Below, piece by piece: positions 47,855-50,171 of a stretch of 64,000 bases of DNA (position 1 is its first letter; each line of letters begins with the position of its first letter). The position numbers were made by a program, and so were the translations under genes. Location: sequence record OR258281.1. One strand, 5' to 3'. The notes under the pieces were generated by a model. It worked only from the letters and a program-made list of their open reading frames with translations. It did not search any database and was not told the DNA's origin.

Positions 47855-48574
47855 ATGAATAATAAAGAAATAGACGAAATTTATAAGGCAAAGAAAGATG
47901 TTTTCTACTTTGCTGAATTATGCTTAGGTACTGAATTATATAAGCATCAAGACGTTATGCTTGATAACCTTCTTAGTGGTGATTCACTAAATGTTGCATT
48001 CAGACAGGCGGGTACTACAACTGTACATGCCATATTCTTTCTATGGAAAGCACTGTTTAATACAAACCATACCTATGCATATCTAAGTAATAACTCAAGT
48101 TCAGGTACTGCGTTTTTAGAGATAGTAAAAAAGTTACATGACAGACTTCCAATTTATCTACAGAGTACTGTAGTACAGAAAAGTACTCAATATATTAAGT
48201 TCAGCAGTAATTCGATAATATTCCAGCGTGGATTTAGTGCTAACGCACTTAGAGGGTTTTCTTTTAATGCATTAATTGTCGATAACTTATGTTTTGTACA
48301 ACATCCAGAAGATTTTTTCAAGTACATTATCCCTTGTACTGCTTCAACTAATGCAAAAATACATCTATGTACATCACTTAATCACAAGTTCGATTTAACA
48401 AACTTTATCTTAATGATGGGTTTATATCGTGATTACGAGATTAGTACTTTTTCGTATGAAGAATCAGAACTCTTTAACGAAAATGTAAAAAGAAATCTTA
48501 TTTCAATGTATGGTGAAGAAAACTATAAGTTAGAGTATGCATGTATTTTGCCGGAGGTTTCCGATGCAAAGTAA
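47855..48574 (+). CDS. Degenerate terminase-large-subunit ATPase domain paralog, 239 aa
   Basis: Colinear with TerL N-domain: HQ (Q motif), FRQAGTTT (Walker A, K lost), [13 protein letters not shown] (Walker B, E lost), [13 protein letters not shown]. Confidence 0.8.
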
Positions 48575-50171
48575 TACATATTCACCTACTAAAAAGCCAG
48601 GGTTAGTAATACCGTATACGGATAAAATGCTAGATGATTTTGACCGTTGTATTGATGACCCTGTATTTTTCATGGAAAACTTTGTAAGTATTCAAACAGA
48701 AGGGGGTTCTCGTAGATTTACTCCTTTTGATTATCAAAAGGAAATGATAAAGAACTTCGGTAATCATAAAAATAATATCATGCTTACTGCACGTCAGATG
48801 GGTAAAACTACGGTAGCCGCAGCATATATTTTATGGTTCGCAATGTTTAAACCAGATCAGACTATATTACTTCTAGGTAACCAGTTATCTGCTGCATTAG
48901 AAATAATGGGCCGTATTCGTTATGCTTATGAAGATTGTCCAGATCATATTCGTGATGGTATTGTAGAATACAACAAAGGTACTATTGTATTTGAAAACAA
49001 ATCCAAAATTATTGCACGTGCAACATCTCCCACTGCTGCCCGTGGTCTATCCGTAAACTTACTATACCTTGACGAATTTGCGTTCGTACCTAACAACATG
49101 CAGGAAGAATTCTGGTCGGCAGTATCACCAACATTAGCAAGTACTAATGGTTCCTGTATTATTACAAGTACACCGAACACAGAATATGATAAATTCGCAA
49201 CAGTATGGTTCCAATCTCAGGTATTCGTTGATGAAGCAGGTAACGAATATGATGAAGATGGCCCAGGTATTAATGGTTATAAAGGTCTAAAAGTAACATG
49301 GGATAAACACCCTAAACGTACTCAAGAATGGGCTGCTGCTGAAGAATACAAAATTGGTGCAAGTATGTTCGCACGTGAACATAACTGTCAATTCGTATCT
49401 TATCAGGAAACATTAATCGATGGTATTAAACTTGGTTTAATCAAAAAGAAAACAGTACGTGAACCTGTACAGTTAACTAAGAAAGTTCGTTGGTATAAAG
49501 AAGTTGAATATGGAATGACGTATGTTATTGGGTTAGATCCTGCTGGTGGTACTGGTGGTAACAACTCTGCAATTCAGGTTTATGAATTACCAACAATGAG
49601 ACAAGTAGCTGAATGGAATGATAACAGTACTTTAATCCCTGACCAGATTAAACTTGTCAACCAGATACTTCGTGAAATTGAGTACCAGATGTTTGAGAAG
49701 GGTGCAAAGAATATAGAAGATCATTTGTTCTGGACAGTTGAAAATAACTCAATTGGTGAAGCAGCTATTATTGCTATTCAGCAAATGGGATTAGAAAACT
49801 TCCCCGGCACATTACTTAATGAACCTCGCAGAACAAGAACTGGTCGTATTCGTCGTGGTATGACTACCTCTAAAGGTACTAAGAAAACTGCATGTTTCCA
49901 TTTACAGAAATTAGTTGATAGTTTTAGATTAGAAATTGCAAGTACTCATTTACATAAAGAACTTAGTGACTTTATTAAATATGGTGAAGATGAAGGTATC
50001 TATAAAGCTAAATCAGGTACTACAGATGACTTGGTGAGTGCTCTATTACTCGTTGTGCGTATGATTGATGTGGTTGCTAAATTTGAAGATGGCACAGCCG
50101 CTGTAATATCTGAAACATTAGATGAAGAAAGTTCTGCCCCGATTGGTTTTATAATGGTTAATCGGCTTTAA
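48564..50171 (+). CDS. gp17: Terminase large subunit (T4 gp17-like), about 535 aa
   Basis: [34 protein letters not shown]; start refined to 48564 behind GGAGG. Confidence 0.97.

Follow-up and report, generated by a model that had tools for sequence, protein, structure and literature searches.

A TerL ATPase-domain paralog lacking the catalytic lysine and glutamate upstream of the large terminase gene of Xanthomonas phage XaC1

Tandem terminase genes of XaC1

The Xanthomonas jumbo myovirus XaC1, a member of the Rak2-like group with a 349-kb genome, carries two adjacent terminase genes in the 64,000-nucleotide stretch of record OR258281.1 analyzed here, which is called the window. Positions 47200 to 50300 match the XaC1 record at 100% identity. 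The downstream gene, XaC1_354, encodes a complete large terminase (TerL). The upstream gene, XaC1_353, encodes a 239-residue paralog of the TerL ATPase domain in which the catalytic lysine and glutamate are replaced. GenBank labels XaC1_353 as "large terminase protein" and XaC1_354 as "terminase". The gene is already known in that it is annotated and is mentioned in papers as a truncated large terminase, which has been described as a hallmark of the Rak2-like phages (PMC5259590, PMC7760394). The papers on this truncated terminase are silent on catalytic-residue loss, selection and function (PMC5259590, PMC7760394, PMC11273794), and no described pseudo-ATPase or inactive terminase paralog was found in the literature, including a 2026 review of packaging machinery. 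What is new is the membership of XaC1_353 in a broad family of predicted pseudo-ATPases, the definition of which residues are lost and which are kept, and the evidence that the gene is under purifying selection, evolves very fast and is usually linked to TerL.

The two genes overlap by 11 nt (48564 to 48574), starting at the ATG of TerL at 48564, and the ribosome binding site of TerL lies inside the 3' end of the paralog gene (Table 1). A sequence-only reading of this DNA had described the 239-aa open reading frame (ORF), the overlap, the Shine-Dalgarno sequences of both genes and the translational coupling of the paralog to TerL in the slot where T4 has gene 16. The ORF, the overlap and the Shine-Dalgarno sequences are read directly from the sequence, and the coupling and the slot are borne out by the overlap and by conserved synteny. 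The window has a GC content of 36%. At this locus a 5'-3' exonuclease gene is followed by those for the 167-aa protein, the paralog, TerL, a virion protein, SSB and UvsX. The same arrangement recurs in Asteriusvirus (A4, 121Q), Eneladusvirus (BF), Mimasvirus (GAP32, CBB, XbC2, Kaldavass) and Erwinia phage Hallingskeid. No public sequencing run contains over 10% of the words of this stretch, and no run was shown to be RNA.

Table 1. Features of the XaC1 terminase locus, in window positions
Feature	Position	Strand	Description	Basis
XaC1_352	47275-47778	+	conserved 167-aa protein, phrog_15898, 5' of the paralog	context, outside the terminase pair
13-nt motif GTACTAAATAACG	47801-47813	+	candidate promoter or regulatory element	alignment of four XaC1-like phages
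Stem-loop	47814-47838 (core 47818-47834)	+	between the 167-aa gene and the paralog; terminator-like, weak T tail	
Shine-Dalgarno of paralog	47845-47849	+	AGGAG, 5 nt before ATG	invariant in four XaC1-like phages
XaC1_353	47855-48574	+	TerL-ATPase-domain paralog, predicted pseudo-ATPase, 239 aa, intact	ORF, BLASTP, Pfam, PHROG, AF2, dN/dS
Degenerate Walker A	48002-48022	+	R50-Q-A-G53-T54-T55-T56 (RQAGTTT, aa 50-56), RQMGKTT in TerL; Lys to Thr, P-loop Arg/Gly/Thr retained	
R133-G134	48251-48256	+	Arg 11 residues before the catalytic-Glu position	alignment with T4 gp17
Degenerate Walker B	48272-48289	+	L-I-V-D143-N144-L (LIVDNL, aa 140-145), LYLDEF in TerL; catalytic Glu to Asn, Mg-binding Asp retained	
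Degenerate coupling (C) motif	48368-48382	+	CTSLN, TSTPN in TerL	
Shine-Dalgarno of TerL	48553-48557	+	GGAGG, within the 3' end of the paralog CDS	
XaC1_354 (TerL)	48564-50171	+	535 aa; Walker A (GKT), Walker B with Glu (DE) and C-motif intact; RNase H-like nuclease domain	

A TerL ATPase domain without its catalytic residues

The sequence of XaC1_353 and a model of its structure identify it as a TerL ATPase domain that has lost its catalytic residues. It is 31% identical to its own TerL over 133 aa (BLASTP, E 1e-19), and it matches Pfam family Terminase_6N (PF03237) with an E value of 1.6e-5, above the gathering score, and phrog_5989 with an E value of 8e-27. The paralog ends in KLEYAC where TerL has REHNC. 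It has no nuclease domain, as there is no Terminase_6C match and the ORF stops at the ATPase/nuclease boundary. The degenerate Walker A, Walker B and C motifs, the altered end and the missing nuclease domain had all been read from the DNA beforehand and were confirmed from the sequence.

An AlphaFold2 (AF2) model built on an alignment of 65 sequences is confident and compact, with a predicted local distance difference test score (pLDDT) of 94.5 and a predicted TM-score (pTM) of 0.91. A Foldseek search of the PDB with this model placed the T4 gp17 ATPase domain first (2o0h), with a query TM-score (TMq) of 0.88 and an rmsd of 2.7 A over the whole protein. The T4 gp17 ATPase entries have TMq values of 0.85 to 0.88, and they are followed by the ATPase domains of the P74-26, D6E, Sf6 and HK97 TerL proteins. 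The ESM Atlas holds an independent confident model of the paralog (pTM 0.88), and its nearest structures are also TerL proteins. By these models the paralog comprises the whole TerL ATPase domain, both core and lid, and ends where the nuclease domain would begin. A lack of the TerL ATPase fold would have counted against the sequence-only reading, and the 0.88 match to 2o0h shows the opposite; its description of a TerL-fold protein with the catalytic Lys and Glu substituted holds in both sequence and model. With the T4 gp17 ATPase domain (2O0H, 3CPE) the paralog shares the fold, the Q motif, the lid subdomain, the Arg, Gly and Thr of the P-loop, the Asp of Walker B and the Arg that precedes the Walker-B strand. 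It differs from gp17 in having Thr for the Walker-A Lys and Asn for the catalytic Glu, in its degenerate C-motif and in the missing nuclease domain.

R133, one of the retained residues, aligns with the Arg of the T4 gp17 sequence VRGNS, at the alpha2-beta3 position. The trans-acting arginine finger of the P74-26 TerL, R139, is at the alpha2-beta3 position (PMC5727402, PMC5389665), suggesting that R133 may be its equivalent.

Relatives of XaC1_353 have lost the same residues and kept the same others. Owing to the divergence of the family, a word-based homologue search found only 2 and then 10 relatives. When 1.84 billion representative proteins were searched exhaustively with a profile, there were 691 hits, and the 150 hits listed, together with relatives found earlier, form an aligned set of 155 proteins. 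The Walker-A Lys is missing in 62 of the 155, and 61 of those are short (median about 250 aa); both Lys and Glu are missing in 54. Among the 55 aligned proteins of at least 450 aa, both residues are present in 54. In the Rak2-like paralogs Lys and Glu are lost in all ten, whose sequences show no variation at G53, R133 and D143 and very little at R50 and T55. The same pattern is found in 50 Lys-less proteins, which retain R50 (92%), Q51 (80%), G53 (100%), T55 (88%), R133 (90%), G134 (96%) and D143 (90%), close to the level in genuine TerL proteins. In these proteins the Lys position is occupied by T, S, L, M, G or other residues and never by K (0%), and the Glu position is mostly N, D, S, C or A, with few keeping Glu. 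XaC1_353 fits this Lys-less family of TerL N-terminal domains, being an ATPase domain alone of about 230 to 250 aa whose gene is flanked by those for the 167-aa protein and TerL. PHROGs divides the family between phrog_5989 ("terminase large subunit") and phrog_27915 ("unknown function").

The Rak2-like truncated large terminases CBB_274, GAP32_268 and BF gp272 have the same slot, size, Lys and Glu losses and TerL coupling as XaC1_353. XaC1_353 is only 16-25% identical to other Rak2-like truncated terminases, and the XaC1-type proteins are a group of their own in the tree.

A metagenomic protein of 555 aa (P0032) is the sole TerL-sized protein without the Walker-A Lys among the matches listed (RQLGNTT). 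It may represent a TerL that is inactive despite its full length, or the alignment may be misleading here. In Stenotrophomonas phage RAS14 (L099, 2936-3421) a 161-aa ORF just 5' of TerL contains the strings SRQ..G..ST and GRRCDILIYES, which resemble Walker A and Walker B in their degenerate forms. It could be a miniaturised relative; its HMM score is non-significant.

Substitution rates show that the paralog is under purifying selection. A contig from the Logan assemblies (L093) has the same gene order as XaC1 and an ortholog of the paralog that is 89% identical. Between these two, the ratio of nonsynonymous to synonymous substitution rates (dN/dS) is 0.18 for the paralog (dN 0.073, dS 0.40), compared to 0.008 for TerL and 0.02-0.10 for most neighbours. 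The paralog ratio is 0.15 for XbC2/Kaldavass and 0.22 for GAP32/CBB, and all three pairs are unsaturated and independent. TerL has ratios of 0.008-0.045 across the compared pairs, and the paralog evolves 10-20 times faster than TerL. The frame is also kept open. Orthologs sharing only 20-29% identity, in at least five divergent lineages, all retain ORFs of 226-252 codons, and the chance of an open 239-codon frame at 36% GC is about 3e-8. Because of these ratios and the intact ORFs at low identity, the paralog is not a decaying pseudogene. Neutral evolution with frequent disruption had been named as the outcome that would speak against function, and the comparison of relatives divides it: evolution is not neutral, while loss or truncation does occur in some relatives.

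A functionless remnant of a partial TerL duplication, kept because its 3' end carries the ribosome binding site and start of TerL, appears very improbable in light of these results. The catalytic residues are gone and substitution is very fast, as expected of a remnant. The gene has also been lost in phage Munch and a Vibrio phage, it has decayed in fHe-Yen9-04, and database annotations give it the name of a truncated terminase (PMC5259590). However, the dN/dS values of 0.15-0.22 in three pairs and the retention of full-length ORFs, with their low probability by chance, argue against it. So do the selective retention of seven active-site and interface residues with the loss of exactly two, the confident compact model, and the same pattern in unrelated phages. 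XaC1_353 instead keeps the enzyme fold, lacks the catalytic residues and is under purifying selection, which marks it as a predicted pseudoenzyme. The best explanation of its sequence is that it is a pseudo-ATPase, predicted to be incapable of ATP hydrolysis.

The family appears to be old. In a maximum likelihood tree the genuine TerL proteins are a nested clade, with the Lys-less proteins on long branches in groups outside this clade. In no case does a paralog pair with the TerL of its own genome, and the XaC1-type paralogs group with those of two metagenomic XaC1-like phages. An approximately unbiased (AU) test rejects a grouping of XaC1-type paralogs with the Rak2-like TerL proteins (delta lnL 45.8, p 0.012), and with it the idea that the neighbouring TerL was recently duplicated. 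The test does not reject uniting all Lys-less proteins in one clade (p 0.49). The sequences are compatible with one old origin of the Lys-less family, with a strength that is limited by the long branches.

Linkage to TerL and possible roles

Most family members that could be placed have a full-length TerL as a neighbour. The start of TerL overlaps the paralog or directly adjoins it in the XaC1-like, Mimasvirus, Eneladusvirus and Asteriusvirus phages, in Hallingskeid, and in unrelated metagenomic phages. Two of these unrelated cases, P0023 (L094/L095) and P0054 (L103), are each directly 5' of a full-length TerL and overlap or abut it. In Xanthomonas phage Xoo-sp13 a Lys-less member is 19 nt 5' of TerL and is labeled "terminase small subunit" in GenBank. 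In another unrelated metagenomic phage the member P0036 overlaps or abuts a downstream gene of at least 502 aa. A second TerL-like ORF is absent from 80 IMG/VR loci whose TerL proteins are 41-51% identical to that of XaC1 and are T4/cyanophage-like. The idea that a phage has either a small terminase (TerS) or the paralog, never both, was dropped, as the upstream ORFs of these 80 loci have neither a TerS match nor another informative one in Pfam or PHROGs and are not ATPase-like.

Terminase motors are usually described as TerL plus TerS, and the TerS of T4, gp16, is known to stimulate the gp17 ATPase. The paralog has the gene position of a TerS, upstream of TerL and coupled to it, in an arrangement conserved among relatives. 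The XaC1 paper reported ORF353 and ORF354 as two tandem large-terminase homologs and found no small terminase (PMC11273794), and T4 gene 16 is absent from RaK2 (PMC3622015). The sequence-only reading had also seen no recognisable TerS at this position, and this holds, with the 167-aa protein having neither a family annotation nor a structure match.

The explanation favored here, put forward tentatively, is that XaC1_353 may well be a non-catalytic partner of TerL that regulates or assembles the packaging motor and occupies the small-terminase slot. This is suggested because interface and active-site residues are kept, the two hydrolysis residues are lost, the protein is co-translated with TerL and there is no TerS. 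The paralog would be made from the message of TerL through translational coupling, and it could dock on TerL via the ATPase-ATPase interface that is used between TerL subunits. This would place R133 at the ATP site of TerL. The paralog would then help to regulate or assemble the terminase without any catalysis of its own, and it might take over part of what the missing TerS would do. We infer the binding to TerL, the action of R133 in trans, the effect on the ATPase and any recognition of DNA. Comparable subunits occur in other ring or arc ATPases. Clamp-loader delta-prime and F1 alpha are ATPase-fold paralogs without hydrolysis that keep interface residues, including an Arg for the site of the neighbouring subunit. 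The likeness is an analogy only, as they have no homology to XaC1_353 beyond the ASCE/P-loop fold.

Several observations weigh against the role of a TerL partner in the small-terminase slot. First, the paralog is missing at the syntenic locus in Salmonella phage Munch, where 134 nt separate a 169-aa homolog of the upstream gene from TerL, and in Vibrio phage 2.275.O; both phages have TerL proteins that are close relatives. A tblastn search with the Hallingskeid paralog matched only itself, so the loss in Munch is stated for the locus alone. In Yersinia phage fHe-Yen9-04 (L003, 2314-2956) the paralog is truncated to 185 aa, and C-terminal remnants (LNSL...GYTRG) in another frame are broken by stops, indicating that the gene is decaying there. 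Because of the absence in Munch and 2.275.O and the truncation in fHe-Yen9-04, the paralog is dispensable in some lineages, unlike a typical TerS. Second, linkage is not universal, since one member (P0062 on L102) is directly downstream of a TerL and another (P0028 on L104) does not adjoin a TerL. Third, the modeled fold of the paralog is not that of a TerS, and there is no charge signature of DNA binding, with a pI of 6.0 for XaC1_353 and a family median of 7.1. Finally, the rate of divergence is unusual. In two metagenomic phages with the gene order of XaC1 (L096 and L097), the neighbouring proteins are 53-86% identical to those of XaC1 (most 70-86%) and TerL is 82-85% identical, compared to just 27-29% for the paralog, the most divergent gene of the conserved block. 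Identity of 27-29% beside a TerL at 82-85% is unusual for a partner that docks on a conserved surface.

Such divergence is what would be seen if the paralog were an immune-evasion factor. Here a TerL mimic without ATP binding would shield TerL from the Avs1-3 and Upx sensors or compete for them. An arms race would drive its rapid evolution, and on hosts without the sensors the phage could do without it. The paralog is the most divergent gene of its block (27-29% against 70-86%), and in the Asteriusvirus phages 121Q and A4 it is 28% identical against 83%. Lineage-specific loss and truncation also agree with this role, as does the co-expression with TerL that the coupling leads one to expect. 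The TerL ATPase domain is sufficient to activate EcAvs2 and Upx, and the ATP bound by the terminase is contacted by EcAvs2 (bioRxiv 10.64898/2026.04.30.721860). Because of that contact, the loss of nucleotide binding could make a mimic non-activating. T4 vs.8 is likewise a phage-encoded TerL homologue consisting of the ATPase domain only (bioRxiv 10.64898/2026.04.30.721860). It is reported to keep Walker A and Walker B and to activate EcAvs2, whereas XaC1_353 has lost these motifs; the two are compared by description only. On the other hand, dN/dS is far below 1, as an overall value that is not site-specific, and the best-conserved residues are the remnants of the active site, with no obvious surface facing a sensor. 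A TerL-fold protein might itself trigger sensors that recognise the fold, and no defence context bears on this reading. Overall an evasion role appears unlikely.

A third possibility is that the paralog fully replaces TerS, with the pseudo-ATPase recognising DNA and picking the packaging start and fixed ends, and with its divergence tracking the sites. It is found at the TerS position and coupled to TerL in genomes with no TerS (PMC11273794, PMC3622015), TerL ATPase domains are able to grip DNA (PMC5389665), and the Xoo-sp13 member carries the label of a small subunit. XaC1 has 32-kb direct terminal repeats, and such long repeats imply site-specific cutting (PMC11273794). With a TerS of the T4 gp16 type the paralog shares the location directly 5' of TerL, the coupling and the fast divergence relative to TerL. 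In contrast to TerS, it has the ASCE ATPase fold rather than a helix-turn-helix (HTH) and a helical oligomerisation core, and it has no DNA-binding signature and is dispensable in some relatives. No TerS structure was among the 50 best-ranked PDB matches of the paralog, and no TerS family matched it in Pfam, PHROGs or NCBIfam. Full replacement is further opposed by the lack of an HTH or TerS-like oligomerisation fold, by an acidic to neutral pI, and by the finding that the P74-26 TerL grips DNA only in the ATP-bound state (PMC5389665), as the paralog has no Lys. Since close relatives package DNA even though they have no paralog or a truncated one, it is doubtful as an essential replacement of TerS, and full replacement seems improbable. 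The interpretation in the sequence-only reading is partly supported, by the fold, the selection, the slot and the coupling. The regulatory or structural subunit or TerS substitute that it proposed is a candidate role, and the gene is not universal, given Munch, 2.275.O and fHe-Yen9-04.

The 167-aa protein encoded upstream was considered as a possible TerS in disguise. Every Rak2-like relative has it, even where the paralog is missing, at 49-77% identity, and its gene is coupled to the 5'-3' exonuclease gene via an ATGA overlap. Its AF2 model (pLDDT 83) is beta-rich with two lobes. The protein has no family annotation, its model matches no PDB entry, the atlas gave no lead and it is not TerL-like, so its identification as a TerS is unsupported. 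It may still be an unconventional TerS.

A pseudo-ATPase in this position would have consequences beyond XaC1. A large group of jumbo phages has yielded no TerS, and what appears to be a dead copy of the ATPase domain of the motor sits in its place in the genome. If XaC1_353 is a motor subunit, it would provide a natural heteromeric viral packaging ATPase and a handle on how the arginine finger lets subunits communicate. As an immune shield, it would link packaging to the sensing of terminases by Avs and Upx. It is conceivable, if rather doubtful, that many phages with T4-type terminases, including the Rak2-like phages, use a third terminase component in place of a classical TerS. Such a component, a pseudo-ATPase descended from TerL, would join the motor or cap it as an arginine finger donor, or it would mask TerL from Avs and Upx. 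The database labels "terminase large subunit", "terminase small subunit" and "hypothetical" can mislead TerL phylogenies and predictions of packaging type.

The upstream spacer and variant TerL genes

The spacer upstream of the paralog contains a conserved motif and a hairpin. The sequence-only reading had assigned the paralog its own late promoter, and this was not confirmed: the exact T4 late-promoter consensus TATAAATA was not found upstream of the paralog, and GTACTAAATAACG and the hairpin are there instead. The motif GTACTAAATAACG, also written as GTACTAAATA(A/T)CG, is invariant in the alignment of four XaC1-like phages and the remaining spacer is variable. The hairpin is shared by these four phages too, and changes in it in L096 and L097 preserve pairing. 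The equivalent spacer region on locus L005 is at 2221-2265. The GTACTAAATA motif, like GTACTAAATAACG, has a single exact copy in the window and is not a repeated element. In Mimasvirus, Eneladusvirus and Asteriusvirus there is a hairpin directly before the start region of the paralog, and the stems contain AGTACT in all except A4. A run of T follows this hairpin in Mimasvirus and Eneladusvirus. Outside the XaC1-like phages, a hairpin and T run come after the 167-aa gene in other genera and adjoin the Shine-Dalgarno sequence of the paralog, leaving no space for a promoter. The message for the paralog and TerL may rely on read-through or processing at the hairpin.

Two peculiarities of TerL genes were also found. 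The best PHROG for the XaC1 TerL is phrog_36964, a profile of 890 positions that is matched only from position 435 on. Intein-containing TerL proteins have been reported for RaK2 and K64-1 (PMC5259590), and the partial match may be tied to these; the XaC1 TerL has no intein. In the Asteriusvirus A4 clade, TerL carries a single additional C, which directly follows the ATG codon in the Walker A sequence RQM|GKT (L002, about 6070-6080), in comparison with 121Q (L007, 2480-2500) and with positions 48795-48815 of the window. The downstream codons of A4 differ from those of 121Q only synonymously, in the +1 frame, and GKTTVAAAF requires a +1 shift. The TerL match starts at or near residue 78 (67-82) in at least 12 independent isolates, some of which are annotated as "terminase large subunit A/B". 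The TerL of this clade may involve a programmed frameshift or be genuinely split, rather than reflecting a sequencing error.

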